The translations under genes and the position numbers were made by a program. From assembly GCA_002269645.1 (NCBI GenBank), contig NIVC01000694.1, positions 310,001-374,000 on the forward strand: a DNA stretch of 64,000 nucleotides, in the 5' to 3' direction. Origin of the DNA: Macrostomum lignano (taxonomy: Eukaryota). Position 1 is the stretch's first letter; each line of letters opens with the position of its first letter. The notes under the pieces are model-generated. The model was not told where the DNA came from. It saw nothing but the letters and a program-made list of their open reading frames with translations, and did not search any database. Shown here one piece after another: positions 9,749-63,827 of this stretch.

Positions 9749-10132
9749 ATCCTAGATATCTGTTTTGGGATATCCCAGATTTAGAGGCCAAATCCTAGGA
9801 TCCAGGAATCTTGGAACACATGCAGGTCACTGTTGGCCAAGAGTCACGTGATATTTATTGATTTTATCCAATGGAAATTTCTTGGTTGAATCTACAAGTT
9901 TGCTCATCTATAAATGATTGCTGTGGCCCAGTATCATCCCAGTTTCTCCTAACATCCTGTCTAAGCTAGTCTACCTGTAAGTGCAAGAGCAAACAGGGCA
10001 AATACAAAACACATTCAGAGCATCCTGTGGGATCTATGTGCTCCACAGGCCCTCAAGCACCGCCTTTTATTTAGCCTGTCAATCAATCCTGACCCCCCCC
10101 CACCGACAGCTGCACCCGCCGACCCCGTCGCC

Positions 10133-13130: not shown

Positions 13131-14049
13131 CAGGTTTCTGGTTTAGGCCTGGGGTTTCTGGTTCAGGCCTTAGGTTTCTGGTTCAGGGCTAGGGTTTCTG
13201 GTTCAGGGATAGGGTTTCTGGTTCAGGGATAGGGTTTCTGGTTTAGGGCTAGGGTTTCTGGTTCAGGGATAGGGTTTCTGGTTCAGGGATAGGGTTTCTG
13301 GTTCAAGGCTAGGGTTTCTGGTTTAGGCCTGAGGTTTCTGGTTCAGGGCTGAGGTTTCTGGTTCAGGGCTAGGGTTTCTGGTTCAGGGCTGAGGTTACTG
13401 GTTCAGGCCTGAGGTTTCTGGTTCAGGGCTGAGGTTTCTGGTTCAGGGCTAGGGTTTCTGGATCAGGGCTGAGGTTACTGGTTCAGGGCTAGGGTTTCTG
13501 GTTTAGGCCTGGGGTTTCTGGTTCAGGCCTTAGGTTTCTGGTTCAGAGCTAGGGTTTCTGGTTCAGGGATAGGGTTTCTGGTTCAGGGGCTTAGGGTATC
13601 TGGTTCAGGCCTGATGTTTCCGGTTCAAAGCTAGGGTTTCTGGTTCAGGGCTGTTTCTGGTTTAGGCCTGAGGTTTCTGGTTCAGGGCTAGGGTTTCTGG
13701 TTCAGGCCTGAGGTTTCTGGTTCAGGGCTGAGGTTTCTGGTTCAGGGCTAGGGTTTCTGGTTCAGGGCTGAAGTTACTGGTTCAGGGCTAGGGTTTCTGG
13801 TTCAGGCCTGAGGTTTCTGGTTCAGGGCTGAGGTTTCTGGTTCAGGCCTGAGGTTTCTGGTTCAGGGCTAGGGTTTCTGGTTCAGGGATAGGGTTTCTGG
13901 TTCAAGGCTAGGGTTTCTGGTTCAGGGCTAGGGTTTCTGGTTCAGGGCTAGGGTTTCTGGTTCAGGGCTAGGGTTTCTGGTTCAGGGATAGGGTTTCTGG
14001 TTCAGGGATAGGGTTTCTGGTTCAGGGATAGGGTTTCTGGTACAGGGCT
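13131..14049. repeat. 20-bp satellite, about 45 copies
   Basis: Unit gggtttctggttcagggcta and variants. Confidence 0.95.
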
Positions 14050-42424: not shown

Positions 42425-42680
42425 CTAGGAAAGAGCCAGTGCCAGAGATACTTATTGAGATGAGATTCAAACAAAGCTTCAGAAGTGCCATGCATCACCC
42501 GGAACTTTGCCTTGAAATGGGCCCACGACCTCTTGATGGTGTTTGTATAGATCAATGGGTCATTAGTGTAGACAAAGGTAAGTCAATAATTCATGACAAT
42601 GTAGTTCTGGCATTGTTCACATGCCCGAGAATTTTGCAATAGCCTGTAGGGTGGCCAGCCAGTGAATAGTTTTCTGGCTG
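42425..42680 (-). mobile_element. Degenerate Merlin (IS1016/ISXO2-like) transposase C-terminal relic
   Basis: The minus strand reads VMNY*LTFV...YTNTIKRSWAHFKAKFRVMHGTSEALFESHLNKYLW. This matches the Merlin/ISXO2 pattern VNH...FV...HTNTIE..W...K...HG.S...HL.EY.W, with an in-frame stop. Confidence 0.65.
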
Positions 42681-44084
42681 TTAGACGTCAGCAGCACAAG
42701 CTCACATAGTATGATATCAATGTCACACAGCTTGGCTGCTAGCCTTAGCCCTTAGATTGGCCTTGGGCACAATTGTAGTAGGTGCAAAAGGCCTTTTAGC
42801 TATAAGTAAATTGGCTGAAATGAGAAAGAAAAGTGAAAAATATTTAAATGCAGTAAAGTAAAAGATTGCCAGATCATTTTTTCTAGTTTAAGGGATGTTC
42901 TACTATGCACCATAGAGGCCACTTAAACTTAATTGATCACCTTGCATTTTTAGCTCAAATAGGCCTAGTCAACAATCTTGCACCAAAAACTATATGAGCA
43001 TCTTTTTGCCCTTGAATCAGGTGTCTTTTACAATGAGCAATTTAATTGATGAGGCACTATTATAGCACTAAGCCATGCATAGCATAAAGTCCAACCAACA
43101 AAAAATTGTTACAGCAATCTTTTTACTACTAAGCCAAATATCTTCCTATGAGTTGGTATTGCCAATAATTTCAGATACAAGCTCTAGCTTTAACACAGGG
43201 TCTTTATTCCACTGCACAAAGCCATCAGTCAATGGATGGTAGATAGGTAATGGGCAATGATCACAAGCTGCTCTCTTTTCTGTAAATACATAGTCTCATC
43301 AACTATCAAAGCCTAGCATTCAGCATTCTGAACTTGCAAGATAATCTTCTCTCTTAGCAGCTTCAAGGCTATATTGAGAACTTCATTCTAGTTCTATGGA
43401 AAAAGATAATAAGCATTAGCAATAGCAGCTACATGACTTACCTGGTTTATAAGATTAGCATTGCCACCTCAAGCTTGGTAACACAATGGTGCACAAAAGT
43501 TCCTATTGTTCATTTCAGGCTTGCCACCATCTAATAGAAGTGGCTGATTCATAAGCTGCAATTGAATATCTTGGTCTTTTTCTCCATTGTGAATGTGCCT
43601 CTCAAACTCTTTCATTTTTTCATAGTTTGCAATATGGCATGCACTTTTTCATGCAGTGAGAGTATACTTTGTTTTCCTGTTAAATCATCAAACCTCTATA
43701 TAGGCATTGAAACAAGTGCACAGGCTTTCTGTCCACAACTGGCTATCAACTCCAATGCCCAAGGAAAAAAGAACACAAGGTGTACATAATGCACCTTCTA
43801 ATCTAAAAATTTTACTTAGCAACAACCATGGAAAGCAGCTTTCTTTTATATGAATGCCTTTGAACATGATAAAGAGAAAATAAGTAATCATTTTCATGAA
43901 TGGGTCTCCATGGCTACAAAAATAAATTTGTTCTTCACTTAAAAAGTTATTCAACTTTTGCATTGCAAGACCAATATCTCATAGCAGATGCTAAATAATA
44001 GCTTGATTACAAAAGTGAGCATGTAGAAGTAGAACTGGTAGCTTGGTCACCAGCAGAGGTGCCTTTACTGGAAGAATAGAGGCC

Positions 44085-44395: not shown

Positions 44396-46801
44396 TGAAA
44401 GTGGATCCTAATAGAATCAAGCAAAGCATATTTGTTGAAAAAAGTTTCTAATTATTATTCTAATTATTATTTGGTTTATAAAAAAGAGAATAAAAAAATT
44501 ATGAAACGGTAATGGAGACAAGCCAGGCTAGTTGCAAAGGCTTTAAGCCAGCCAGTATGGCTAATACCCCCACATCTCAACCCCCACCAGAGTACAAAGG
44601 CATGTATAGTGGCACCTCCTAGCATGTCTAACACACTATACTCAGAGAGTAACAATTGCAATATATATGCACATTATGACAGGGCAGGCAGCCAATAGCT
44701 TCTTTTTCATCATCCCAATAAAGTCAAAGAATCAACTTAAGTGAGCTTTAGACTAATGATTCTCATTAAATAGTTGTTTGAGTACTTATATAACATGTAT
44801 TTGAAGATCAAAAAAAATTAAAATTTGAAATGAACTATTAAGTTAAAAAATTCATCTTTAGACAAAGGTCAATCTTTTTTTTAAAATATAAATATAATCA
44901 CATAAACCAAACCAAAAACCTGCATACAGCATGAATATCAACTATGAAATATGCTATATAAAAATAATCACTATTGATTGAATTGGTTGAAAAAACTAAA
45001 TGCTCAACCAAGTCCTTGACTTATCCAAAATCTAAGCTTGGTTGGACTCTAGGACTTGGTCTATACTTATTTATGCTACTATTAGCTTTAACAATATGCT
45101 TGTGTTTAGCACACTTTGAAGTTATAGCAGATTAAAAATATGAAGGAATTGTAGCTTTTTAATTAGCATTAGACTCATATTTTTATATCTAATACCAATT
45201 AGAACATCTTAAAAACTTTTATATTGACTTAATTTTTTATTTTGTTGAAAAACTGACAGTTGAAAAAGTCAGAAATTTTTCTTTTCTTATGTTCTAGACT
45301 AGCACTAGTTATTGCAAGAAAATCTTGCAATAAAATCTAACAGAATGCAAGCTAGGTTTTTTACTTTAATATTGGTTACCTTATTTGGTTTCCATAGCTG
45401 CAAAAATATCTTTTCCATTTTTAGAACTTTTTCTGTTTGGCAATCATATTTCAGATTAAGCCCCAAGAAGGCCATAACATATATCAGAATAACTAAATTA
45501 AAAATTTGTATGCTAGTCTAGCAGTCTTCAAAGGCATCTGCTTATATTGCCACTTGGTATTGTGGATTGGAAAATACTGAGATATATTGAAGATGATTAA
45601 AAGGGCACTTATAGCACTGCCAGGTGGCTTCAAAGTCACTATGGGCTGATTCAACTGGTTGTTCACTGAAGCTACCAAGCCCCTTGGCAACTTATTGTAG
45701 AATATTGACATGATCTTGAGGTATCTGCATATTGTCTGGGAGTGAGCAATGTAAAGACTGAAGTTAGCTGCTAGAATTTGGCCAAAGTAAGCTTTGCACA
45801 GTGTAGAAATCCTGTAGAAAGTGTAGAAAGTTGTAGAGTCCTGTTGCATCTAAAAATGTTTGTAATTACTTGGATGTTTTCAGAAAAATGAGCTCAGAAA
45901 GTTTATTCCAAAATAATTGTTATAAAACATTTTATTGCAACATAAAAGCATTTAACTAGAAATCTCATACCTTATCTCAAATCTCATACTGATTTAAGCA
46001 TAATTTAATGCTTAAATCAAATAAACAGACTTCACTTCAGTGCAAGCTTCCACTTTCACAAATTCTAAATCACCACGAAGGACAATGTAAGCTGTGTTAT
46101 GACAGATCTCAAAGTTTTTGGCAATGCTCACACACCTGTCACTATCCACAAAGCTCCAAATTTCATACATAAGAGTGGCTATTCAGATGGACTCCCTTCC
46201 CATCTGGTTTGGTGTCTGATTTGGTATCCTTCCTTCTTTTATTACCATGCCAATGGGCTTTCTAATGTTGTGACTGTCAGAGAACGTCTAGGCTCTGTGG
46301 ACAGCATCAACTACCTCTTTGAATCGCTTGCCAGCAATTGCCAGGTGACAAATGGTGGCACACTGATGTGGGTTTTCTTGTCTTTATTATATTGAACATG
46401 ACATTGGAATGCATTTCACAACAATTATTTAGGCTTATAATTCAGAAAAAAACGTTTGTATCAGAGCTAACTTGGTTACTTAAATTGCTACTCTTAGTTT
46501 CTTATAATACTTGTATATAGAAAGTTATGGTGTTAGGTTCTCTTAGCAGGTTATTGCTTATGGACTACTTGGTATTTTGTCATGTTTATTATTAAGAATT
46601 TCGGGATAAAAATTAATAAGCATAATCATCGTGGCCTAAATATTCTGTTCTAAAATAATTTGTGCAATATAACTTGAAAACCATAGCCAGGACATTGATC
46701 ATTGTTATGTAGAATGTAGGGTAGAGTGCATGCTGGCTCAACAATCCACCACTAAGCCTGACATTTCTCCCACCCCGCAGCCCAGCGGCCTCCAGCCCTC
46801 A

Positions 46802-48206
46802 ATGTCGCCGCCGCCGCCACCGCCCACAGTGGACTCCCTGGCCGGCCTGCGCACCCTGCTGCGCGGCCCCAGCCGCAGCCGGGAGTACAACTCCTACTCC
46901 GGCAAGATCCACACCCTCAAGTGGAGCAGCGACGGCTCCCGGCTGGCTACAGGCTCCGTAGACCGCGTCGTCAACCTGTTCTCCCTGGACTCCGGCCGCC
47001 TGTCCAAGGACGTCACATTCAAGGGCCACACGGGCAGTGTGGACCAGCTGTGCTGGAACCCGCGCCACCCCAGCCTGCTGGCCACCGCCAGCTCGGACAA
47101 GTCGCTGCGCCTGTGGGACGCCCGCACGCAGCACTCGGTGGCCACGCTGGTGCTCCGCGGCGAGAACATCAACGTGACCTGGTCGCCCAATGGCGAGTGC
47201 ATCGCCGTGGGCAACAAGGAGGACCTCGTCTCCTTTGTTGATGTGAAGACGCGCAAGGTGGCCCGCGAGGAGCAGTTCAAGCTGGAGGTGAACGAGGTGT
47301 CCTGGAACTGCACCGGGGACGCCTTCTTCATGACAACCGGGCTTGGCAGCGTGCAGGTGTTCTCGTATCCGGACATGCAGCTGGAGACCACCCTGCAGGT
47401 GGGTTCGCAACTGCTGATCGGCAGTTTTACTGCTTCTGTCTTTCCCGGCTGCCATTGCCATTTCTGGAAGATTTTGGCTTGAAATTACGATACTGCCTAC
47501 TGATGAGTAGCATGGAAAGAATATGAAGCAAATCTCTTTTATAATGTGTGCAAAAAGCTTGCGCACTGATAGTTAAAATACAACATCGAGCGCGTGGTGC
47601 CTTTGGTGCTGGCGCCTTTGGTGCTGGCGCCTTTGGTGCTGGCGCCTTTGGTGCTGGCGCCTTTGGTGCTGGTGCCTTTGGTGCTGGCGCCTTTGGTCCC
47701 CAAAGACACCCAATGAAAACTCCTGGCTACGCCCCTGCCGAGCTGCCAGTCTGATCTCAATGGCTTCAATGGCTGTTCGAATCGCTCATTATTGGCCCCA
47801 TCGCCGCCCCGCCCTCCAGGCACACCCCACCAACTGCATCTGTCTGGACTTCGACCGCACCGGCCGCTACTTCGCCACTGGAGCCGCGGACGCCCTGGTG
47901 ACGATCTGGTCCGCCACCGAACTGGCGCCGCTGGCCGCCTCCGGCCGGCTGGAGTGGCCGGTGCGCACCATCAGCTTCAGCCACGATGGCCAGCTGCTGG
48001 CCGCCGGCTCCGAGGACCACTTCATCGACATCTCGCACTCGGCCACAGGCGAGCAGGTGCTGCAGCACGCCACTAAAAACTCCTCCTTCACTCTGGCCTG
48101 GCACCCCCGCTGCTACCTGCTGGCCTACGGCGCCGACCGGGACAAATACCACGACGCCAGGGACGCCGCCTGCGTCAAGACGTTTAGCGTTGCCGTGGAG
48201 AGCTGA
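46802..48206 (+). CDS. THOC3: THO complex subunit 3 (Tex1), WD40 protein
   Basis: Exons 46802-47398 (an in-frame upstream ATG at 46730 is an alternative start) and 47820-48206, phase 0. Motifs: KIHTLKWSSDGSRLATGS, GHTGSVDQLCW, GENINVTWSP, AHPTNCICLDFD, LEWPVRTISFSHDG, FTLAWHP. Confidence 0.93.
47594..47698. repeat. 15-bp minisatellite in the THOC3 intron
   Basis: Unit gcctttggtgctggc. Confidence 0.9.
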
Positions 48207-48904
48207 TGAAGCTCGGACAGCCGACTGTGGATTCTGCGTCGGTCTGATTGGTAGACAAATTAGCAGTATGCTATAAACAGAAACAAATGTGCATTTCTAT
48301 TAAAGCGCATTGCTTGTTGCCTCGAAGCTACTGCTGTTGACTGCATGCAGCTTTTGTGCTTCTGTGTACGCTCATACAAATCTGACGCAGATCGGTCCTT
48401 TGTGGTTGCTTAACCTGATCTGTTTATTACTCTGGACTTTCTGTGTACATGATAGTGCTTATATAAATGCCAAATGCTGAGTTCCCGTCGCACATGTTCT
48501 CAGAGGCATCTCTGACGCAGCCATAACGTTGAGTTCTTGTTCATTATTTTTCTGACAGTATATTCATAGAATGTATCTGGGCTCACGCCACTGAATTCTC
48601 TAATAAAAGACAGGCCTGTTTTCCTAGCAATCAGAGGGCAGCCGTTGTGCCTTAACTCTCCCCACAGTCCAGATTTGTCCGGCCTTTCATCTAGCTGCTC
48701 AGTTCCCCGAGCTCTGGTCCCCTCCATCCCCTGTTACTGCTGGCTTTTACACAAATCCCAGTCGCTGCTCTCGTCACTGACCCATTTGCTTTGTGCCTGC
48801 CTAAACTGGAAGCTGTCTGTTAGCTCTGTGAGTCCTCAGGCTACCCTTCCAGATCCGCAGACTGAGCAGGCAACGTCCTATATCCTCATGGTGAGTAGCC
48901 AGCC

Positions 48905-49212
48905 TCCCAGATCCTCAGGCTGAGCAGCGGCCCTACCAGATCCTCGGCCCTCCCAGATCCTCAGGCTGAGCAGCCGCCCTCCCAGATCCTCAGGCTGAGC
49001 AGCGGCCCTCCCAGATCCTCAGGCTGAGCAGCGGCCCTCCCAGATCCTCAGGCTGAGCAGCGGCCCTCCCAGATCCTCAGGCTGAGCAGCGGCCCTCCCA
49101 GATCCTCAGGCTGAGCAGCGGCCCTCCCAGATCCTCAGGCTGAGCAGCGGCCCTCCCAGATCCTCAGGCTGAGCAGCGGCCCTCCCAGATCCTCAGGCTG
49201 AGCAGCCGCCCC
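48905..49212. repeat. 29-bp minisatellite, about 10 copies, in the THOC3-mannosidase spacer
   Basis: Unit cagatcctcaggctgagcagcggccctcc. Confidence 0.93.
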
Positions 49213-49272
49213 AGTCGCCCTGGCCAGTTGAGCCCAGCCGAATCCGCACCCATTGCAGCGCCGGCAGCCACT

Positions 49273-52200
49273 ATGCGCTGGCGCTACCTCAAGTACTACT
49301 TGGCCGTCTTCTTGCTGCTGCTCTTCCTGTTCTACAACATGCTGGACCGGACGGCCTCGCCCGAGCCCGGCCAGATCTCGCAGTCGGACCTGGCCGCCAT
49401 GGAGGAGCAGGTGCGCAAGTTTGAGTCGCAGCTCAAGCTGACCCGCGAGGCTCTACGCCTCATCAGGGAGGCTGTGCAGGAGATCACGGCCGGCCGGTCC
49501 GGCAACGCCAAGATCGACAGTCTGCTGGCGCACCTCAACGCCAACGGCCAGCTGGGGGCGGGCAACGCCGCCCTCGCTGATCTGCACGGCGCGCTCAAGG
49601 GCGCCCTGCAGCCGCCGCCTGGCGTTGCAGCAGCCGGCCAGCAGCAGCAGCAGCAAATTCCCGTGCCGCAGCTGGCGGTCAACGCGTTGCGCACCTGCCC
49701 GGCGCCCTGGTCGGCGCTGCTGAACCGACAGCATCGGGCCGACCTGCCGATGTCCCGACTGTACAGCGAGATCAGCTTCGACAATCCCGACGGCGGTCCG
49801 TGGAAGCAGGTGAGGATTTTCTGTCCAGCTGTGGTTTGAGAGTCCACGACTCCACAGCTTTGAGAATACTTAGTGGCGCAGTGCGGCTACAGGTGTTGCC
49901 AGTCAGTGGGCTACAGGTGTTGTCAGTCGGTGGGCTACAGGTGTTGTCAGTCGGTGGGCTACAGGTGTTGTCAGTCGGTGGGCTACAGGTGTTGTCAGTC
50001 GGTGGGCTACAGGTGTTGCCAGTCGGTGGGCTACAGGTGTTGCCAGTCTGTAGGTTAGAGGTATCGATGAGCATTGTCAGTCAGTGGGTTGCAGGTATCG
50101 ATGAGCATTGTCAGTCAGTGGGTTACAGGTATCGATGAGCACTGTCAGTCAGTGGGTTGCAGGTATCGATGAGCACTGTCAGTCAGTGGATTACAGGTAT
50201 CGATGAGCATTGTCAGTGGGTTACAGGTATCGATGAGCATTGTCAGTCAGTGGGTTACAGGTATCGATGAGCATTGTCAGCCGGTGGGTTACAGGTATCG
50301 ATGAGCATTGTCAGTCAGTGGGTTACAGGTATCGATGAGCATTGTCAGTCAGTGGGTTACAGGTATCGATGAGCATTGTCAGTCAGTGGGTTGCAGGTAT
50401 CGATGAGCATTGTCAGTCGTTGGGTTACAGGTATTGATGAGCATTGTCAGTCAGTGGGTTACAGGTATCGATGAGCACTGTCAGTCAGTGGGTTGCAGGT
50501 ATCGATGAGCACTGTCAGTCAGTGGGTTGCAGGTATCGATGAGCACTGTCAGTCGTTGGGTTACAGGTATCAATGAGCAGGAACTCAAGCCACCAGTCAG
50601 CTAAACGTGAGCCACTCGCTGCTCGCCATGAACTCCGCAGGGCTGGCAGGTGACCTTCGATCCTCAGCGGTTCACCCCCGCCAACAAGCTGCAGGTCATT
50701 GTCGTGCCGCACAGCCACAATGACCCCGGCTGGCGCAAGACCCTGGAAGAGTATTACCGCACGGAGACCGTTAACCTGCTCAATGGCATGCTGAGCAGCC
50801 TGCCCACCTTACCCCGCATGACCTTCATCTACGCCGAGGTGTCCTTCCTGTCCATGTGGTGGTCGGAGCTGTCCAACCAGCAGCGGGACACCGCCAAGCA
50901 GCTGATCGGCTCCGGCCGGCTGGAGATCGTCAGCGGCGGCTGGGTGATGCCGGACGAGGCCAACAGCCACTACTTCGCCCTGGTGGACCAGCTGGTGGAG
51001 GGCCACCAGTGGCTGGAGAAGCACATCGGCGTGCGGCCCAACTCGTCCTGGCAGATCGACCCGTTCGGCCACTCCAGCAGCCTGTCCTACATCTACCGGA
51101 AGGCCGGCTTCCGGCGCCAGCTGGTCCAGCGGGTGCACTACTCGGTGAAGAAGCGGCTGGCCCGGCAGCGGCAGCTGGAATTCCACTGGAAGCAGCTGTG
51201 GGACCCGCAGGTTGCGGAGCCGGGCAGCGACATGCTGTGCCACATGATGCCCTTCTACAGCTACGACATTCCGCACACCTGCGGCCCCGACCCCAAAATC
51301 TGCTGCCAGTTCGACTTCCACCGCCTGCCCGGCAGCGCCGTCACCTGTCCGTGGCGCGTGCCGCCGCAGGCTATCAGCGATGCCAACGTGGCGGCCAGGG
51401 CGGAGATGTTGCTGGACCAGTACAAGAAGAAGGCGAGCCTGTTCGGCACCAACGTCCTCCTGGTGCCGCTGGGCGACGACTTCCGTTACCAGGGCAACGA
51501 GTGGACCAGGCAGTACGAGAACTACGACAAGCTTATGGCCTACATCAACAGCAGGGCCGACTGGAATGCCAATGTGAAGTTCGGCACCCTGTCCGAGTAC
51601 TTTGACCTGCTGGCTAAGCAGAATGCCAGCTTTCCTTCGCTCACAGGTGAGCTAATTGCTCTAACTGTTAACCATGGAGTTCTAGACTCTGAAACTGGAG
51701 TGGAAACCCACTGGTCTAGTCTGGCCATGGAGTTCTAGACTCTGAAACTGGAGTGGAAACCCACTGGTCTAGTCTGGCCATGGAGTTCTAGACTCCAGCG
51801 GGCATCATTTGTCTACCTAACTTTACGCCCGCCACTCCTTCAGGCGACTTCTTCACCTACGCGGACCGGGACGACCACTACTGGAGCGGCTACTACACCA
51901 GCCGGCCTTTCCACAAGCGCCTGGAGCGGACCCTGGAGCACTCGCTGCGTTCCGCTGAGCTGCTGTTTTCCTACGCTGTTGGCCGCGCCCAGCGAACTCA
52001 CCGACGGTCTGCGCTGAAACCCGCGCACCTGTTTGAGTCGCTCACCACCGCCAGGTAAGCCTGAGACTACCATACCCGATTCATGAATCTCTGACCACCT
52101 GGACAATAAATTCATCCTCGCCAAGGAGAATCCCCTTCCTCACCACCGCAGAATCCCCTCATCACCACCGCAGAATCCTCTCCCCAACTTGCCATAAAAT

Positions 52201-54466
52201 ATGCGCACCAAAACGACCCGCTGCCACCCCGCACCCCAGACGCAGCCTGGGCCTCTTCCAGCACCATGACGGCATCACGGGCACAGCCAAGGACCACGTG
52301 GTCATAGACTACGGGCAGAAGCTGCTGGCCGCGCTGTCCAGCGCCCGCCTGGTGATGCGCCGCTCCGCCCAGTTCCTGCTGCTGCCCGCCACCTACAGCT
52401 CCGATGCTGGCGAGCTGCTGGCTGACTTCGAGTCCCGCGACCGGCACGACTCGCTGCCGACGCCAAGCGTCATCGACATCCGCTCCGGCGCCGCCGCCCG
52501 CTACGTTGTCATCTTCAACCCGCTGGTCAGAGCTCGCAAGGAGGTCATACGGCTGGTTGTCAACGACGCCCAGGTAATTGTCAGGGACCACGAAGGCAAG
52601 GAGCTGCCGGCTCAGCTGCTGCCGCAGTTCACCGCGGACTGGAAGGACATCCGCACCGACTGCTTCGGCGTGGCCGTGCTGCTGCGTCTGGAGCCGCTGT
52701 CCCTCACCCGCCTGGCCGTCAGCCGCGGCCCCAGCGCCAGCCTCTCCGTCTCCGCCCTCGCCCACACCAGCGCCGGCGCCCCCCTGCCCGCGCCCGCCCC
52801 ATTCGCTGCGGCCAGCCGGCCGGCCAAGCTGGCGCTGGAGTCAGAGCACCTCAGCGTGGAGTTCGACCCCACCAGCGGACTGCCCACCGGCCTCACCAAC
52901 AAGAAGCTGGGCGGCCGCCGCATGCCGCTGAACGTGAAGTTTTACACCTACGGAGCGCGGCCTGGCGGGGAGCGCAGCGGCGCCTACTTGTTCCTGCCGG
53001 ACGGGCCCGGCCGGCCAGCCTCCGACCAGCCCGGACCCGTCACTCGGGTGTCCGGCCCGCTCGTGTCCGAGGTGCACCGGGGCGGCCAGTTCGCCCGCAC
53101 CGTGACGCGGCTGTACGCCAGCCCGGACTCCGCGCAGGGTGCCGGCCTGGAGATCGAGAGCCTCGCCAACGTGCGCGGCAACTCCAACCTGGAGGTGGCT
53201 GTGCGGCTGGACACCGGGCTCGGACAGAGGAATTTCTACTCGGACATCAACTGCCTGCAGCTGGCCAAGCGGACCTACTGGGAGAAACTGCCTCTGCAGG
53301 CCAACGTGTATCCCATGCCCTGCCAGGCCTTCATGCAGGTAGAGCTAATCGCTGCCGTCTAGTCTCCAGCATTTGATAACTCTTTATACCTCGGTAGCTC
53401 AATTAAAATTTCTTCGAACGGTCACAATTGTCACTAGTCACAGTCACTTGTCAAGAAGTAATCACTGTCACTTGTCAAATAGTCACTGTCACTTGTCAAA
53501 TATTCACTGTCACTTGTCAAATAGTCACTGTCACTTGTCAAATAGTCACTGTCACTTGTCAAATGGCCACTGTCACTTGTCAAATGGCCACTGTCATTTG
53601 TCAAATAGTCACTGTCACTTGTCAACTAGTCACTGTCACTTGTCAACTAGTCACTGTCACTTGTCAACTAGTCACTGTCACTTATTAATTAGTCACCGTC
53701 ACTCTGTGAAATCAGCCCAAGTGGGATTTTTAAAGTAGCAGGCCAGGCGTTGCCATAATCCTTCAGTTCTATCCAAGCTCCAAGACTGATCAGCAAAAGT
53801 ACATTTGCACAATTTCCTTTGTCCCTGCAGGCTAACGGCGTGCGCCTGTCCGTGGTGGCGGCCCAGCCCATGGGGGTGCACAGCCCGGCCAGCGGCAGCC
53901 TGGAGCTGTTCCTGGACCGCACCCTGGCCCAGGACGATGGCCTCGGCCTGGAGCAGGGCGTCCTCGACAATCGGCCAACGCCCAGCACCTTTCGCCTGCT
54001 GCTGGAGGCTGCCTCTGGCCCCGCCGACGCCGACGGCGACCTCGGCTTCCCCAGCGGCCTGGCCACCCTCAGCCTGGACTCCCTGCTGCACCCGCCTGTG
54101 GCGATGCCCTCCGCCAGGCTCGCTGCCAACTCCGACCTGGCCGGCGTCCCCGCCCGCCTGTCGCTGGCGCCCCCCGCCGGCCTCGCCTGCGACCTGCACC
54201 TGCTGAACCTGCGCACCCTGCACAATGAGCGCACCGCTCAGCTCAGCCTGCACCGCCGCGGCGTCTCCTGCGCCTTCCCGCTCACCACCGACGAGTGCCG
54301 CGTGTCCGCCTCAGCCTCCGTGCCGCTGTCCGGCCTCTTCGCCGACCTGTCGCTGCTGTCCGCCAGGCGGAAGTCGCTCAGCCTGATGTACGACTACGGG
54401 CCCGTCGCCGAGGCGCTGGCGGTGCCGCCCATGGAGATCGAGACGGCCGAGGTGGAGCTGGGCTGA
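49273..54466 (+). CDS. MAN2A1: Golgi alpha-mannosidase II (GH38), type II membrane protein, about 1162 aa
   Basis: Exons 49273-49809, 50641-51646, 51844-52054, 52240-53338 and 53831-54466 total 3489 nt in frame. N-terminal TM, GGPWKQ|[52 protein letters not shown]2A1 versus MAN2A2 cannot be resolved. Confidence 0.93.
49884..50580. repeat. Two adjacent related minisatellites (24-bp, then 34-bp) in mannosidase intron 1
   Basis: Units gctacaggtgttgtcagtcggtgg and ttacaggtatcgatgagcattgtcagtcagtggg. Confidence 0.93.
51672..51796. repeat. 53-bp tandem duplication (about 2.3 copies) in mannosidase intron 2
   Basis: Unit ccatggagttctagactctgaaactggagtggaaacccactggtctagtctgg. Confidence 0.9.
53425..53700. 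repeat. 21-bp minisatellite in mannosidase intron 4
   Basis: Unit tagtcactgtcacttgtcaaa. Confidence 0.9.
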
Positions 54467-55134
54467 TGAGGCATTCAATATTCATCATGCTGTGCCTCTG
54501 ATGCTTTGTGAATGCGCAATTCATTTCTGATCAATGCTGATCGCCCCGTCCCATCCCGCGCTCTTTGTTGCCTGGCCCGGTTTGCTTATTGGCTCTTTGT
54601 TAACCTGCCGAGCGCTCCCTGCTCACAGAGAATTGGCACCCGCAATGTCCCGGTCCCCGCGGCCTCCTGTAGCTGTGCCAAAAGTATTCGGGCCTGTTTT
54701 TTTCCTTTCAAACCTCAACTTGAGTTGACTGAGCGGACACAGCTATGCCAGTATAATATATTATTAGTGTTTATAAGGCCACTTGTTTGTTTCCTTCACT
54801 CTTCTTTCCTTGTTGGTCCGGATTGGTGAAAGTCTATTGCCTGTGCTGCCTTGTTTTTTTCTTGTACTTGTTGTTTACCGCTTGAAGCAAATGCTTTTGA
54901 CTGTTATATTAATTCTAATGGAGCTTCTGCTGTATAGATCCCTGAGCCGGAGTTGTTGTTTGATTTTGTTTTCAACTCCTGGAAGTAAAAAATTCAGATG
55001 CTTTGACCGAGAAGCGCGGAGACTTTGCAGTTTTTTTGTAGTTTTCTTTTGCGAGGCTACATAAAGCTTTAGATCTGGGACTAGAAAGTTAGTTTGCTTA
55101 GGTTCAGGTGTTGCAACTTGCTTAAGTGCAATGA

Positions 55135-55438
55135 GCAGTAGGGTCTGGAGCAGCAGGGTCAGGGGAGCAGCAGGGTCAGGAACAGCAGTGTCGGGAGCAG
55201 CAGTGTCAGGAGCAGCAGTGTCAGGAGCAGCAGTGTCAGGAGCAGCAGTGTCAGGAGCAGCAGTGTCAGAAGCAGCAGTGTCAGAAGCAGTGTCAGGTGG
55301 AGCATAGTCAGGAGCAGCAGTCAGAAGTAGCAATGTCAGGAACAGCAGGGTCAGGAGCAGCAATGTCAGGAGCAGTAGTGTCAGGTGGAGCATAGTCAGG
55401 ATCAGCAGTGTCAGGAACAGCAGGGTCAGGAGCAGCAG
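55135..55438. repeat. 15-18-bp minisatellite in the mannosidase-BRK1 spacer
   Basis: Unit gcagcagtgtcagga and variants. Confidence 0.9.
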
Positions 55439-55467
55439 AAACGCCCAACCCTCCCTCCGCAGCCGCC

Positions 55468-55737
55468 ATGTCGCACACGAACTACATGGACCAGGTGCAG
55501 CAGGATGTGCAGCTGGACTGGAACCAGCGGGAGTACATCGACCTGATCGGGTTCACCCTGAAGCGCATGACGGACTTCCTGAACCAGTTCGACGTGTCCT
55601 GCCGCAGCAAGATCGCCCAGCTGAACGAGAAGCTGACGCTGCTGGAGCGCAAGGTGGACTTCATCGAGGCGCGCATCAAACGGGACGAGCTGGTGGCCGC
55701 GGGCAAGCAGGCCGCGCCTGGCGACCCGGCTAACTGA
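55468..55737 (+). CDS. BRK1: BRICK1/HSPC300, WAVE/SCAR complex subunit (89 aa)
   Basis: Reads VQLDWNQREYIDLI...DFLNQFDVSCRSKIAQLNEKLTLLERKVDFIEAR. A ctccgcag| acceptor lies 5 nt before the ATG. Confidence 0.95.
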   Translation: MSHTNYMDQVQQDVQLDWNQREYIDLIGFTLKRMTDFLNQFDVSCRSKIAQLNEKLTLLERKVDFIEARIKRDELVAAGKQAAPGDPAN

Positions 55738-56124
55738 GACTCCGCCTGCTTCCCTTCTCTTTAGCTGATTGTTCAATAAGAATGCGCTAGCGGCTACTTT
55801 CAGTAGGCTGAATACCACATTTATCAGTTTTTATTTAACCGGAGCGGTGGCCAGCTGCGCCTGCGCCTGGCTTGTACTCCAGATTGCCCTGCGCATCTCG
55901 GCATGCCGCCTTTTTATTCTGTACAGTTTGGTTAATTCCCGCGATTTGGGCGCTACCTGCATGTTCGTTTATTGATCGTTTTGATTCACTAAATTTTAAT
56001 ATAACCTGCTGCTCTATGTTTAAAGGATTTGACTTACTGTCTTTCTTTGCGGTTCATTTTTCATTCTTCGGCCCAGTTAATTCGATTTCAAAATAATAAA
56101 ATTAGCGGTACAAAAGGATGAAGC

Positions 56125-56620
56125 AGTAGTGGTAGATGATGAAATGTTGGTAGAGGATGAAGAAATGATGGTAGAGGATGAAGCAATGATGGTAGAGGAT
56201 GAAGCAATGATGGCAGAGGATGGGGCAGTGATGGCAGAGGATGGGGTAGTTATGGCAGAGGATGGGGTAGTGATGGCAGAGGATGGGGTAGTGATGGCAG
56301 AGGATGGGGTAGTGATGGCAGAGGATGGGGTAGTGATGGCAGAGGATGGGGTAGTGATGGCAGAGGATGGGGTAGTGATGGCAGAGGATGGGGCAGTGAT
56401 GGCAGAGGACGGGGTAGTGATGGCAGAGGATGGGGTAGTGATGGCAGAGGATGGGGTAGTGATGGCAGAGGATGGGGTAGTGATGGCAGAGGATGGGGCA
56501 GTGATGGCAGAGGACGGGGTAGTGATGGCAGAGGATGGGGTAGTGATGGCAGAGGATGGGGCAGTGATGGCAGAGGATGGGGTAATGATAGAAGAGAATG
56601 GGACAGTCATGGTAGAGGGT
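56125..56620. repeat. 21-bp minisatellite in the BRK1-ZFYVE19 spacer
   Basis: Unit gatggcagaggatggggtagt. Confidence 0.93.
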
Positions 56621-56685
56621 AATTACAACGATAGCTTCGGTTAAACACAGTAACCAGGGTAACCAGAGTAACTAAGCGAATAGCG

Positions 56686-57841
56686 ATGCCACCCGCAGCC
56701 CGCGCCCGCATGTCCTGCTACGGCTGCGGCAGCGAGTATTCCCTGCTGCGGCGGGAGTACGGCTGCGACAATTGCGGCTTCTCCTACTGTTCGCGCTGCC
56801 TGCAAACCAAGAAGCCGGTGCCCAAGCTGAACGGCAAGCTGGGCAAAATGTGCGCCAAGTGCCTCCGCCAGCAGGCCCAACCGCCTGCCGCCAAGCAGCC
56901 AATCGAGCCGCCCGCCAACTTCGTCAAGCGGGTGGAGGCCCTGGAGGCACGGCAGACGGGGCCGGCAAAGAGGGGCGGCGGCGGCGGCGGCGGCGGCTCC
57001 AGGGCGGCCGACCCGGACCGGGAGGCGCGGGAACGCCTTGAGCGGCTGAAGCAGCGGCCTGGCCAGGCCCCGCCGCCCTCTGACCAGGACCTCCGCTCTC
57101 GCCTGGAAGCCTTGCAGGGCCAGACGGCCGAGACGGAACCTGGATCGGATGCACCGGCTGTTGAGGCTCCGCGCCCGCAGCTGTCAGAGGCGGAGCAGGT
57201 GGCAGCGCTCATGGAGTCGGCGCAAGCCCGGGCCCGCATCGACCAGCAGCGGGAGCGCGAGGCCGCCTCTCGCGATCGAAAACTGGCGGAGCGGCTGGCC
57301 GCCCTGCGGGGAGTCGATGCGGACACCGCCGATGCCGCTGAGGCCTCCGATGCCAAGGCGGCAGCGGCGACCGCTGAGGCCGAGGGAGCCGCGGCAGGAT
57401 CAGCAGACGCGGATGCCGAAGACGCGGACGCGCTGAGCCGCGAGGCGGCCGAGCTGATGCGCAGCGCAGAGGCGGAGGTCCGGGCGCTGCAGGCGGACCC
57501 GGAATTGGCGGCGCACCTGCAGCGCCGGCAGCAGAAGCAGAAGAAAGGCAAGACGGAAGCAGCGACAGCCAGCCCTGCGTCACAGCCAAAGCCGGCCGAG
57601 CCGGAACAGATCAGCGACAGCCAGGTAGAAACGGCCATCCGGGATGCCCTGGCCCTGGCCAGACGAAGACTTCACAGACGACGAGGATGTCTCCGGCGGC
57701 TCGGACAGCGAGCGCTGGTGCTGCATCTGCAACGCGGATGCCGAGGTCCGCTGCCCGCAGTGCATGGGGGACCTGTACTGCCGGCGCTGCTTCCGCGAGG
57801 GCCACAGCAAGGGCGACGGGCACGCAGCGCGGCCGGTCTAG
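56686..57841 (+). CDS. ZFYVE19: Abscission/NoCut checkpoint regulator (ANCHR)-like FYVE-type protein with one frameshift near 57660
   Basis: N-terminus CYGC...[16 protein letters not shown]...CAKC. The C-terminal [30 protein letters not shown] is in the +1 frame (57644-57841). Confidence 0.85.
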
Positions 57842-58088
57842 ACAGAGTCTTGCAGAAAATTCCCGATTGCTCCATTGAGTTTTTTGTGTTCTGTTCATAG
57901 AGTTTATTTCATATATCCTATTGCTACTTGTGAGTAGCTGATTTCTATTTTATTCTGCTGTTTATAAAGTGATTACATCGATGAAATGGCGTGCCAGCTT
58001 TGCCGCCTTCATCAAGTGCTTCCACTTATTTACTTTTCTTTCAATCTGTGTGACTAAAAACTAATTGTCTGCAAATTCTGAGGGGGTT

Positions 58089-59150
58089 GAGACAGCAGCC
58101 ACCTCAGGCAGATGGGATTTGAGACAGCAGCCACTTCAGGTAGATGGAATTTGAGACAGCAGCCACTTCAGGTAGATGGAATTTGAGACAGCAGCCACTT
58201 CAGGTAGATGGAATTTGAGACAGCAGCCACTTCAGGTAGATGGGATTTGAGACAGCAGCCACTTCAGGTAGATGGGATTTGAGACAGCCACCACCTCTGG
58301 TAGATGGGATTTGAGACAGCCACCACCTCTGGTAGATGGGATTTGAGACAGCCACCACCTCAGGTAGATGGGATTTGAGAAAGCCACCACCTCAGGCAGA
58401 TGGGGTTTGCCGTTTGAGACAGCAGCCACCTCAGGCAGATGGGATTTGAGACAGCAGCCACCTCAGGCAGATGGGATTTGAGACAGCCACCACCTTAGGT
58501 AGATGGGATTTAAGACAGCCACCACCTCAGGCAGATGGGATTTAAGACAGCCACCACCTCAGGCAGATGGGATTTGAGACAGCCACCACCTCAGGCAGAT
58601 GGGATTTAAGACAGCCACCACCTCAGGTAGATGGGATTTGAGACTGCAGCCACTTCAGATAGATGGGATTTGAGACTGAAGCCACTTCAGGTAGATGGGA
58701 TTTGAGACTGCAGCCACCTCAGGCAGATGGGATTTGAGACAGCCACCATTCAGGCAGATGGGGTTTGCCGTTTAAGACAGCAGCCACCTCAGGCACATGG
58801 GATTTAAGACAGCCACCACCTCAGGCAGATGGGATTTGAGACAGCCACCACCTCAGGCAGATGGGATTTGAGACAGCCACCACCTCAGGCAGATGGGATT
58901 TGAGACAGCCACCACCTCAGGCAGATGGGATTTGAGACTGCAGCCACATCAGATAGATGGGATTTGAGACTGAAGCCACTTCAGGTAGATGGGATTTGAG
59001 ACTGCAGCCACTTCAGATAGATGGGATTTGAGACTGAAGCCACTTCAGGTAGATGGGATTTGAGACTGCAGCCACTTCAGGTAGATGGGATTTGAGACTG
59101 CAGCCACTTCAGGTAGATGGGATTTGAGACTGCAGCCATCTCAGGTAGAT
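58089..59150. repeat. 32-bp minisatellite, about 33 copies, in the ZFYVE19-PCCA spacer
   Basis: Unit gagacagcagccacttcaggtagatgggattt. Confidence 0.95.
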
Positions 59151-59203
59151 GAGAATGCTGAACTCCCACGCCAATCCCCTCTGCAACCCCTCGTCCCGCT
59201 GCC

Positions 59204-62200
59204 ATGCTGAGCCTGCTGAGCGCTCACCGCGGCCCGGCCGCAGTCGCCATGCGCACCCTGTGCTCTCACTCTGCCGCCAGGCAAGCCGACGCCATCTACT
59301 GGAACGACAAACACGACAGCAACGAGTCGCGCTTCGAGAAGATCCTTATCGCCAACCGCGGTGAGATCGCCTGCCGCGTTATCAACTCCTGCAAGCGGCT
59401 GGGCATCAAGTCGGTGGCCGTCCACAGCGAGATCGACGCCTCCAGCAAGTTCGTCCAGCTGGCTGACGAGGCCGTGTGCATCGGGCCGGCGCCCACCAGC
59501 AAGAGCTACCTCAACATGGAGGCCATCCTGCAGGCCGTGAAGCAGACGGGCGCCCAGGCGGTGCACCCGGGCTACGGCTTCCTGTCGGAGAACACGGTGT
59601 TCGCCAAGCGCCTGGAGGACTTGGACGTGGTGTTCCTGGGCCCCAACTCCAAGGCCATCCGTGCCATGGGCGACAAGATCGAGAGCAAGCGCATCGCGAA
59701 CAAGGCCAAGGTCAACTGCATCCCCGGCTTCGACGGCGAGGTCAAGGACGCTGATGAGGCCGTCAAGATCGCCAACGACATCGGCTACCCCGTCATGATC
59801 AAGGCCTCCGCCGGCGGTGAGTGCCCCGGCTTCTTAGAGCTGGCTGATTAACATGGCTGATTAAGTGAAGATTGTCTGTCCTGAAAACGTCTGTAAGACG
59901 AAACGCGTTGGCATTCAATTTTTAATGCTTGACTTTGCATTTCTTGCTGTTTCGTAGCAACTCTCCCGGATTTTTGGAGCTGCTTTTTCCCTGCTCAATA
60001 AATCATTTCCAGCCTTTGTTAGATACCAACCGAAGGGCACAGACGAATCTCTAGTAAGATCCCTACAATGTCCTTACCGAAATCCCCACAAGCAGCCCAT
60101 CAGGACCCCACAAACAGCCCACCAGAATCCCCACAAACAGCCCACCAGAATTCCCACAAACAGCCCACCAGAATCCCCACAAACAGCCCACCAGAATCCC
60201 CACAAACAGCCCACCAGAATCCCCACAAACAGCCCACCAGAATCCCCACAAACAGCCCACCAAAATCCCCACAAACAGCCCACCAGAATCCCCACAAACA
60301 GCCCACCAGAATTCCCACAAACAGCCCACCAAAATCCCCACAAACAGCCCACCAGAATCCCCACAAACAGCCCACCAAAATCCCCACAAACAGCCCACCA
60401 GAATCCCCACAAACAGCCCACCAGAATCCCCACAAACAGCCCACCAGAATCCCCACAAGCAGCCCAGCAGAATTCCCACAAACAGCCCACCAGAATCCCC
60501 ACAAACAGCCCACCAAAATCCCCACAAACAGCCCACCAGAATCCCCACAAACAGCCCACCAGAATCCCCACAAACAGCCCACCAGAATCCCCACAAACAG
60601 CTCACCAGAATCCCCACAAACAGCCCACCAGAATCCCCACAAACAGCTCACCAGAATCCCCACAAACAGCCCACCAGAATCCCCACAAACAGCTCACCAG
60701 AATCCCCACAAACAGCCCACCAGAATCCCCACAAGTAGCCCACCAGAATCCCCACAAACAGCCCACCAGAATCCCCACAAACAGCCCACCAGAATCCCCA
60801 CAAGCAGCCCACCAAAATCCCCACAAACAGCCCACCAGAATCCCCACAAACAGCCCACCAGAATTCCCACAAACAGCCCACCAGAATCCGCAGGAACTCC
60901 CTCAGTCAGATCCCAGGAAATGATCCTCGCCGCGCCCCGCAGGAGGCGGCAAGGGCATGCGCATCGCCTGGAACGACAAACAGGCCCGCGAGGGCTACCG
61001 GCTGTCGCAGGAGGAGGCCAAGTCCAGCTTTGGCGACGACCGCATGCTGATCGAGAAGTTCATCGACAAGCCGCGCCACATCGAGGTGCAGGTGCTCTGC
61101 GACCGCCACGGCAATGCGCTGTACTTGAACGAGCGCGAGTGCAGCATCCAGCGGCGCAACCAGAAGGTAATCGAGGAGGCGCCCAGCGTGTACATCGACC
61201 CTGACACCCGCAAGGCCATGGGCGCCCAGGCCACCGCGCTGGCCAAGGCTGTGGGCTACGACTCCGCCGGCACCGTTGAGTTCCTGGTGGACTCGAAGAA
61301 GAACTTCTACTTCCTGGAGATGAACACCCGCCTGCAGGTGGAGCACCCCATCACCGAGTGCATCACCGGAGTGGACATTGTGCACCAGATGATCCGCGTG
61401 GGCAAGGGCCACCCGCTGTTGCTCACCCAGAAGGACATCGGCGTGAAAGGCTGGGCCGTGGAGTGCCGCGTGTACGCCGAGGACCCCTACAAGGCGTTCG
61501 GCCTGCCGTCCATCGGCCGCCTGACCACCTACTCGGAGCCCACCGCCTTGGAGAACGTCCGCTGCGACAGCGGCATCCAGGAGGGCAGTGAAATCTCCAT
61601 CTACTACGACCCCATGATCTGTAAGCTGGTCACCTACGGCAAGGACCGCCAGTCCGCCCTCAACACCATGGTCAACGCTCTGGACAACTACGTGATCCGC
61701 GGCGTCACCCACAACATCCCCCTGCTGCGTGACATCGTCACCGAGAATCGCTTCGTGTCCGGCGACATCACCACCAACTACCTGCCGGAGGTGTACCCGG
61801 ACGGCTTCCGCGGCAAGCAGTTCAGCGACCGCGACCGGCTCAACATCGCCGCCGTGTCCGCCGTAGTCTTCGCCAAGAACGACCTGCGCAACAAGACATA
61901 CCTGAAGAAGGACCGGTCCAACATTGTGGCCGGCGAAGCCAAGAAGTCTTTCGACTGGGACATCGTCGCCTCCCTGGACGGCAAGGACCTGCTGTGCCGC
62001 GTCAGCTACAAGGAAGGCGGCTTCACCGTGGCCTTCGAGGGCAGCGAGACTCTGCAGATCAAGGACAACTTCAGCCTGGCCAACAAGGTCATCCCGGCCG
62101 TCATCAACGGCGATTCCGTCTGCATGCAGATGATGTCCCGCAGCTTCGATGAGCGCGTGACCCTGCAGTACATGGGCACCAAGGTGAGTGAGCTGTGTGA

Positions 62201-63827
62201 GTCGGTCTGCAGTGCATGGGCACCAAGGTGAGTGAGCTGTGTGAGTCAGTCTGCAGTACATGGGCACCAAGGTGAGTGAGCTGTGTGAGTCGGTCTGCAG
62301 TGCATGGGCACCAAGGTGAGTGAGCTGTGTGAGTCGGTCTGCAGTGCATGGGCACCAAGGTGAGTGAGCTGTGTGAGTCGGTCTGCAGTGCATGGGCACC
62401 AAGGTGAGTGAGCTGTGTGAGTCGGTCTGCAGTACATGGGCACCAATGTGAGTGAGCTGTGTGAGTCAGTCTGCAGTGCATGGGCACCAATGTGAGTGAG
62501 CTGTGTGAGTCAGTCTGCAGTACATGGGCACCAATGTGAGTGAGCTGTGTGAGTCAGTCTGCAGTACATGGGCACCAAGGTGAGTGAGCTGTGTGAGTCA
62601 GTCTGCAGTACATGGGCACCAATGTGAGTGAGCTGTGTGAGTCAGTCTGCAGTGCATGGGCACCAATGTGAGTGAGCTGTGTGAGTCAGTCTGCAGTGCA
62701 TGGGCACCAAGGTGAGTGAGCTGTGTGAGTCAGTCTGCAGTGCATGGGCACCAATGTGAGTGAGCTGTGTGAGTCGGTCTGCAGTACATGGGCACCAATG
62801 TGAGTGAGCTGTGTGAGTCGGTCTGCAGTGCATGGGCAACAAGGTGAGTCGCTATGCAAAACTCGCACCTCCTGCAGTGCACCACGATAGTCCGCACGGC
62901 TCGCGCCTACGATCTGTCGAAATTCATGCCGGTGCGCTCAGACAAGGACACCAGCACCACCATCAAGGCGCCCATGCCTGGCCTGGTGAAGTCCGTCGGC
63001 GTCACGGTGGGCCAGACGGTGGCCGAGGGCCAGGAGATTTGCGTGCTGGAGGCCATGAAGATGCAGAACAGCCTGAGCTGCGCCATCGCTGGGAAGGTGA
63101 GTTTTGCCACTGGATTTTCTTTCCTTTCAGCCGGTCTCAAATCCGGTCTCACATCCAGTCTCATATCCAGTCTCACATCCAGTCTCACATCGAGCCTCAC
63201 AGTCTCATGGCCAGTCAAAATCAGTCTCATGGCCAGTCAACAATCAGTCTCATGGCCAGTCAACAATCAGTCTCATGGCCAGTCTAACAATCAGTCTCAT
63301 GGCCAGTCTAACAATCAGTCTCATGGCCAGTCTAACAATCAGTCTCATGGCCAGTCTAACAATCAGTCTCATGGCCAGTCTAACAATCAGTCTCATGGCC
63401 AGTCTAACAATCAGTCTCATGGCCAGTCAACAATCAGTCTCATGGCCAGTCTAACAATCAGTCTCATGGCCAGTCTAACAATCAGTCTCATGGCCAGTCT
63501 AACAATCAGTCTCATGGCCAGTCAACAATCAGTCTCATGGCCAGTCAACAATCAGTCTCATGGCCAGTCTAACAGTCAGTCTCATGGCCAGTCAACAATC
63601 AGTCTCATGGCCAGTCTAACAATCAGTCTCATGGCCAGTCTAACAATCAGTCTCATGGCCAGTCTAACAATCAGTCTCATGGCCAGTCTCAGTCGGTCTC
63701 AGCCAGGCTCACAGCTAGTCTCACAATTGGTCTCTCCTCCCGCCCGCAGGTGAAAGCCGTCCACTTCAAAGCCGGAGAGACGGTGAACGAAGAGGACGTG
63801 ATCGTAGAGCTGGAGCCGCTGGCCTGA
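59204..63827 (+). CDS. PCCA: Propionyl-CoA carboxylase alpha chain, mitochondrial (716 aa)
   Basis: Exons 59204-59816, 60943-62183, 62878-63096 and 63750-63827 total 2151 nt in frame. Transit-like N-terminus, [52 protein letters not shown], and the biotin-acceptor motif EAMKM. Confidence 0.95.
60083..60890. repeat. 23-bp minisatellite, about 35 copies, in PCCA intron 1
   Basis: Unit cccacaaacagcccaccagaatc. Confidence 0.95.
62164..62849 (+). repeat. 44-bp minisatellite made from the PCCA exon 2/intron 2 boundary, about 15.5 copies
   Basis: Unit tgcagtacatgggcaccaag|gtgagtgagctgtgtgagtcggtc. The first 20 nt of copy 1 are coding. Confidence 0.95.
63125..63700. repeat. 24-bp minisatellite in PCCA intron 3
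   Basis: Unit caatcagtctcatggccagtctaa. Confidence 0.93.

Follow-up and report, generated by a model that had tools for sequence, protein, structure and literature searches.

A stretch of 64 kb from the flatworm Macrostomum lignano (assembly Mlig_3_7, GCA_002269645.1; contig NIVC01000694.1, bases 310001-374000), hereafter called the window, carries five genes, THOC3, MAN2A (Golgi alpha-mannosidase II), BRK1, ZFYVE19, and PCCA, arranged head to tail and all on the + strand according to an open reading frame (ORF) scan and to gene models in which the ORFs of the window were spliced by hand. No opposite-strand gene lies between the five neighbours, and this is the same-strand adjacency used in defining operons of this species (PMC8629364). 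The distances from stop codon to ATG are 1066, 1001, 948, and 1362 bp, the third becoming 972 bp when ZFYVE19 is taken to start at 56710. An earlier note had named these five genes on one strand with these gaps, and had proposed that they form a single polycistronic unit resolved by spliced leader (SL) trans-splicing. The gene models, together with homology and domain matches, confirm its account of the genes. Its attribution of the DNA to a flatworm is also right, locus L004 (NIVC01000694.1, bases 355465-375737) agreeing with the window at every base over 18,536 nt. Here we weigh the operon that it proposed.

Each of the five named families is supported by significant full-length homology and by its domain set. 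THOC3 (46802..48206; exons 46802-47398 and 47820-48206) encodes 327 aa identical to the M. lignano protein Mlig010034.g2, the next named matches being THO complex subunit 3 at 53-56% identity, and its intron holds a 15-bp array at 47595-47697. MAN2A (49273..54466; exons 49273-49809, 50641-51646, 51844-52054, 52240-53338, and 53831-54466) encodes 1162 aa in five exons, with a match to Golgi alpha-mannosidase II of Drosophila (E = 1e-221; GH38); tandem arrays occur in all four of its introns. The single exon of BRK1 (55468..55737, 89 aa) matches BRICK1 (PDB 3p8c chain E, E = 2e-22). PCCA (59204..63827; exons 59204-59816, 60943-62183, 62878-63096, and 63750-63827) encodes 716 aa in four exons, including a PCC_BT domain, with arrays in all three introns.

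ZFYVE19 (ANCHR; 56710..57841) is intronless and encodes FYVE and ANCHR-like B-box domains. Translation most likely begins at 56710, the second ATG, because the product of a related species begins at that methionine (MSCYGCGS, P0131) and because a putative CAG acceptor at 56696-56698 sits between both ATGs. Compared with two other copies in the genome, the window has an insertion of one nucleotide near 57655 (57640-57665), reading ctggccCTggccag vs. ctggccGC-gccag in both other copies. The last 60 codons, which specify the C-terminal B-box, are thereby out of frame in the window copy, and the annotation calls those last 60 residues alone; the window ZFYVE19 is either a decaying or pseudogene copy or the product of an assembly indel.

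Spacers in three genome copies

The earlier note had further described every gap as an AT-rich part followed by a satellite and then by the next gene, and this anatomy recurs in all four spacers, in which a first stretch of 240-620 nt with 35-50% GC precedes the array. Spacer 1 (48207..49272, + strand as are the others) has AATAAA at 48602 in the 3′ untranslated region (3′UTR) and a 29/58-bp array at 48844-49211 (368 bp). In spacer 2 (54467..55467), an AT-rich 3′UTR with AGTAAA at 54984 and CATAAA at 55060 is followed by a 15-bp array at 55133-55438 (306 bp), and in spacer 3 (55738..56709), a 3′UTR with AATAAA at 56095 leads to a 21/42-bp array at 56115-56618 (504 bp). Spacer 4 (57842..59203) consists of an AT-rich 3′UTR with TATAAA at 57963 and ACTAAA at 58053, 33 copies of a 32-bp array at 58087-59151 (1065 bp), and a C-rich putative 5′UTR of ~50 nt. 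From the end of the array to the AG of the candidate acceptor there are 8-80 nt of unique C-rich DNA, and from the AG to the ATG another 5-50 nt.

With poly(A) sites predicted from hexamers and composition, the distance from the putative poly(A) region to the acceptor amounts to ~265, 71, 80, and 8-100 nt in spacers 1-4 once the arrays are subtracted. Whole stop-to-ATG gaps minus arrays measure 297-698 nt, which lies within the repeat-subtracted distance of <1 kb that defines M. lignano operons together with the same strand and an SL-spliced downstream gene (PMC8629364). Between the predicted poly(A) region and the acceptor, little unique DNA is thus left for a separate promoter, and in three of the four spacers this argues against conventional internal promoters. 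Scarcity of the consensus 5′ splice site (GTRAG) in the spacers was also considered and set aside, as the arrays deprive the count of statistical meaning.

The cluster is present in three copies, namely the window and the loci L001 and L002, with identical gene order in all three; the BRK1 product is encoded on three scaffolds of GCA_002269645.1, and PCCA corresponds to Mlig032858.g1, g2, and g3 on three scaffolds. Names of this form (MligNNNNNN.gN) were tried as marks of one transcriptional unit and rejected, for they rather denote copies within a 95% identity cluster. Non-array DNA of the three copies is 96-99% identical, which defeated footprinting across them. The arrays differ in length, measuring 368, 450, and 403 bp (window, L001, and L002, respectively) in spacer 1, 306, 641, and 583 bp in spacer 2, 504, 595, and 346 bp in spacer 3, and 1065, 2713, and 987 bp in spacer 4, where total spacer length is 1.3, 3.0, and 1.3 kb.

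Putative acceptors and the spliced leader

Pyrimidine-rich CAG acceptors had been noted before the ATGs of THOC3, MAN2A, and BRK1, with weaker ones before ZFYVE19 and PCCA. Indeed, C-rich tracts ending in CAG are found 5-21 nt upstream of the THOC3, MAN2A, BRK1, and ZFYVE19 ATGs, all on the + strand. The putative SL acceptor of THOC3 is a C/T-rich tract at 46760..46780 that ends in CCGCAG, so that the exon would begin at 46781; the tract is conserved in copy L002, and GC rises at this point from ~35% to ~60%. For MAN2A, where the earlier note had one acceptor, spacer 1 offers three candidate AGs, ending at 49227, 49258 (TTGCAG), and 49267 (CGGCAG). The putative BRK1 acceptor CCCTCCCTCCGCAG in spacer 2 ends at 55462, 5 nt upstream of the ATG, and that of ZFYVE19 in spacer 3, CCACCCGCAG, ends at 56698, 11 nt upstream of the ATG at 56710. 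PCCA has three candidate AGs, with their last bases at 59144, 59148, and 59153, where the satellite of spacer 4 ends. The CAG of ZFYVE19 at 56696-56698 belongs to an 8-mer shared with other genes of the cluster.

This 8-mer, CCGCAGCC, occurs eight times in the 64 kb vs. 2.4 times expected, a post hoc statistic, as the motif was picked by inspecting these very sites. The + strand has five of the eight occurrences, and three of these mark the putative acceptors of THOC3, BRK1, and ZFYVE19 (46775-46782, 55457-55464, and 56693-56700), whose AGs lie 21, 5, and 11 nt upstream of the respective ATGs; the longer CCACCC(C)GCAGCCC is common to THOC3 and ZFYVE19. Its recurrence at three unrelated gene starts points to a common processing signal, and it may represent a type of acceptor context confined to housekeeping genes that are rich in GC. 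Three of the five gene starts, vs. 15-16% of all ATGs in the window, have in the 15 nt upstream a YAG preceded by pyrimidines to at least 60% (P ~0.03 by a binomial estimate). Two further clues were discarded: one-mismatch forms of the 8-mer before MAN2A (CGGCAGCC) and PCCA (CCGCTGCC) cannot be counted when the window has 154 such matches, and the starts of 5′-partial coding sequences at NCBI, which precede the ATGs by 3-14 nt or even follow them and do not coincide with an AG, are uninformative as to trans-splice sites.

M. lignano has a single SL of 35 nt, CGGTCTCTTACTGCGAAGACTCAATTTATTGCATG (Ustyantsev and Berezikov, 2021; PMC8629364), which is absent from the window itself, as expected. 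Direct evidence of SL use at PCCA in a close relative comes from a Logan RNA contig (L003) of run SRR30276804, from a related Macrostomum species, which is 3068 nt long and encodes a PCCA that is 85% identical. At its 5′ end, an Illumina adapter tail is followed by CTCAATTTATTGCATG, which equals the final 16 nt of the SL from M. lignano, and next by a 33-nt 5′UTR and the ATG. PCCA mRNA is thus SL-spliced in a close relative, and the junction, the sole SL junction observed, carries the M. lignano SL. A contig from another run (L005) encodes a ZFYVE19 orthologue and is mRNA-like, since it ends directly after AATAAA; the ZFYVE19 acceptor has the same position, 10-11 nt upstream of the ATG, in a related species despite differing sequence further upstream. 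Exact-protein look-ups with BRK1 and with the window ZFYVE19 ORF returned no RNA contig, and a chimeric query, in which complete BRK1 was combined with N-terminal segments of THOC3, MAN2A, and ZFYVE19, retrieved relatives of THOC3 and ZFYVE19 only, and none of MAN2A or BRK1.

One operon, several units, or separate genes

If the cluster were one operon, RNA polymerase II would initiate at some point in the AT-rich stretch that precedes 46780, and would then transcribe all five genes. Each upstream mRNA would be freed by cleavage and polyadenylation in its own AT-rich 3′UTR, and each downstream mRNA would obtain its 5′ end from trans-splicing of the 35-nt SL onto a CAG acceptor located 5-50 nt upstream of the ATG. 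The spacers would owe their length of ~1 kb solely to expansion of the fast-evolving minisatellite in each. We give even chances to the proposition that all five genes constitute one SL-type operon of M. lignano, and regard an operon of full or partial extent, of a known type, as likely. The polycistronic unit of the earlier note is supported in part: it stands as regards those marks of an operon that can be looked for in sequence, and SL addition has been seen at PCCA alone, in a related species; for the genes other than PCCA we infer SL addition, as we do the poly(A) sites and co-transcription from a single promoter.

Several lines of evidence lead to the one-operon reading. Operons are documented in this very species: among the transcripts assembled for M. 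lignano, approximately 7% are precursors in which several trans-splice sites occur (Wudarski et al., 2017; PMC5730564), and 30% of the genes are SL-spliced and 15% reside in operons (PMC8629364). The putative acceptors share a specific motif, and the PCCA orthologue is SL-spliced in a relative. Moreover, the genes upstream in the window are spaced at 3-8 kb and occupy both strands, whereas downstream the + strand run goes on. Finally, in older UniProt models, which derive from the first assembly, MAN2A is joined to BRK1, and PCCA to the gene that follows it, which encodes a coiled-coil protein; in flatworm annotation, polycistronic RNA often gives rise to fusions of this sort, and chimeric gene models are taken as a sign of operons (PMC12582326). 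These particular models may possibly be pure ab initio predictions.

In its layout the cluster resembles the published M. lignano operons in species, in its conserved same-strand housekeeping genes, and in spacers that are inflated by repeats. Repeat-subtracted distances between neighbouring SL-spliced genes peak at ~100 bp in this genome (PMC8629364), and the repeat-subtracted spacing here is likewise near 100 nt, with very short putative 5′UTRs after CAG. The difference lies in size: of the M. lignano operons, 75% consist of two genes and 18% of three, with a maximum of nine (PMC8629364), and five genes would belong to the rare tail vs. the 93% with two or three. The supplements of the papers, searched for gene names and Mlig identifiers, gave no match for the locus.

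Operons of C. elegans hold 2-8 unrelated housekeeping genes with spacers of ~100 nt and a dedicated SL2, and couple 3′ end formation to downstream trans-splicing. The present cluster shares with them functionally unrelated housekeeping genes in one direction; it differs in that M. lignano has, according to the literature, one SL, and in that the raw spacers are ~1 kb and filled with minisatellite. An intercistronic region of the C. elegans type, ~100 nt, is not seen here, the raw ~380-1100 nt becoming comparable only after subtraction of arrays. Tunicate operons (Ciona, Oikopleura) have almost no intercistronic DNA, and thus the likeness is in the SL trans-splicing of housekeeping polycistrons and the difference in the long spacers found here. 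Parasitic flatworms (Schistosoma, cestodes) have operons with a single SL type and spacers of tens to hundreds of nucleotides, in analyses limited to spacers of at most 300 nt (PMC12582326). The single SL type and the chimeric gene models as a tell-tale sign are common ground, whereas the present gene set is not conserved there, as judged from ZFYVE19 and PCCA in Schistosoma intercalatum and Sparganum proliferum.

A number of observations weigh against one operon. ZFYVE19 was not found within 10 kb of PCCA in either of these two parasites, and the three copies in M. lignano, being 96-99% identical, are recent duplicates, so that their conserved order says little on selection. No M. lignano RNA contig for the five genes was found in the collections searched. 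In the ZFYVE19 orthologue contig, 60 nt of unspliced sequence are retained 5′ of a strong acceptor, ctccttctctccag, located 10 nt before the ATG, and the contig starts with ATTGCAT, a 7-nt SL-like end that matches the SL only up to the last base and is doubtful; as SL evidence this 5′ end is ambiguous. Regarding the acceptors, the published top motif [T/C]TNCAG is fitted by a single candidate, the TTGCAG of MAN2A, and in copy L002 the BRK1 acceptor CCGCAG has become CCGATG (9980-9995), which removes the AG and also creates an out-of-frame upstream ATG. Acceptors are in any case no proof of an operon on their own, because ~60% of SL-spliced M. lignano genes lie outside operons (PMC8629364). Canonical AATAAA is absent from two of the four spacers (2 and 4), which have variant hexamers only. 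Last, the raw distance from the predicted poly(A) region to the acceptor is ~380-1100 nt (~2.8 kb in copy L001), leaving room for a promoter, possibly within the array.

An alternative is a partial or hybrid operon, in which some neighbours are co-transcribed, for example BRK1-ZFYVE19-PCCA with their 8-80 nt of unique spacer DNA, and one or more internal promoters give rise to separate or additional transcripts. We consider this possible but unlikely. An internal promoter would be most plausible in a long array or in spacer 1, where the ~265 nt of unique DNA after the poly(A) signal are several times what the other spacers hold. The size distribution given above, in which five genes are uncommon, also favours a smaller unit, as does the tendency of transcriptional units assembled from RNA-seq to break at repeat-rich spacers (PMC8629364); however, no sequence mark of an internal promoter was found, and all four spacers are alike in anatomy.

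Five independent genes, each with its own promoter and outron, SL-spliced or not separately, and merely close and co-oriented, would accord with the large non-operonic share of SL-spliced genes (PMC8629364), with gaps of ~1 kb when proximal upstream regions of at most 2 kb have sufficed as M. lignano transgene promoters (PMC5730564), with a spacing so unconstrained that the spacer 4 array varies from 987 to 2713 bp between copies, and with the lack of synteny in Neodermata. We nonetheless find this account improbable, as only 8-80 nt are left in three of the array-free spacers, confining a promoter to the 3′UTR of the neighbour or to a simple minisatellite, and as the co-oriented run is long (the five genes, at least three downstream, and one upstream) vs. 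the alternating strands further upstream.

Minisatellites, neighbouring genes, and significance

Minisatellites are found in all eight introns of THOC3, MAN2A, and PCCA as well as in all four spacers (window 47399-63749). They make up ~72% of intron bases, ~84% of the spacer bases 3′ of the predicted poly(A) regions, and ~1% of coding bases. Several arrays start or end exactly at a processing site, involving duplicated 5′ splice sites, duplicated acceptors, or a stop codon. In PCCA intron 2 (62163-62849), a 44-bp array tandemly repeats the exon end and the 5′ splice site, with GGCACCAAG/GTGAGTGAG intact eight times and AATGTGAGT in other copies, and therefore the intron begins with a row of potential donors. 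Two further cases lie past the end of the window, in a stretch (L006) whose coordinates are converted to those of the window by adding 49194. At L006 17531-17815, the acceptor CACTCCAG/CAAC is repeated in a 22-bp array of 13 copies, whose end is separated by 4 nt from the ATG of a Sedlin/TRAPPC2L-like gene, and a 33-bp array of 39 copies at L006 18238-19527 starts within the last codons and the stop codon of the same gene. It seems to us very improbable that the arrays are non-neutral, whether because mutation there is coupled to splicing or to transcription or because they have a function, for instance in supplying redundant SL acceptors or in spacing 3′ end formation from trans-splicing.

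The + strand run continues for at least three genes past the window, with a coiled-coil repeat gene, the Sedlin/TRAPPC2L-like gene, and a second coiled-coil gene, and the unit may extend into these. The putative acceptor of the first coiled-coil repeat gene is TTGTTTCAG. The two coiled-coil genes (L006 15387-17083 and 23512-24273, both +) are paralogous and share an 18-residue repeat, NRADLAAILDEVRADRAE. The ORF of the first starts after the acceptor tttcag/GGC without an ATG, and an in-frame AUG at the SL end could serve as the source of its start codon.

Upstream, the genes of the window are VWA (+), AAA_33/CNPase-like (+), ASC channel (-), an unknown gene (+), a kinase (-), and a 1161-aa protein (+), after which ~7 kb of AT-rich non-coding DNA precede THOC3. 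These 7 kb contain no recognisable element and no clear transposon boundaries; two inverted repeats of 47 nt at 42264-42871, with 83% complementarity and an interval of 514 nt, may represent a small non-autonomous transposon. The five cluster genes (window 46802-63827) have a GC content of 0.82-0.94 at third codon positions. The value is 0.92 for both the TRAPPC2L-like and the AAA_33 gene, 0.83 for the ASC channel gene, 0.73 for the coiled-coil gene downstream of the window, and 0.55-0.68 for the VWA, unknown, kinase, and 1161-aa genes (compared region 3840-37291). Rfam detected no RNA family anywhere in the window, and the five-gene region has no tRNA gene; two overlapping tRNA-Leu(CAG) calls by ARAGORN at 13831-13980, inside a 20-bp satellite at 13133-14049, are almost certainly false positives.

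For M. lignano, such operons have already been described genome-wide, and the cluster is at most an unusually long further example, so that knowledge of flatworm operons would be unchanged even if it were confirmed. The sole less familiar point is the completeness with which minisatellites fill the introns and spacers, and their frequent abutment on processing sites. If the one-operon reading is true, the cluster would rank among the larger operons of a flatworm open to transgenesis, and its three copies, which differ almost only in array length, provide a natural test of spacer length against downstream expression.

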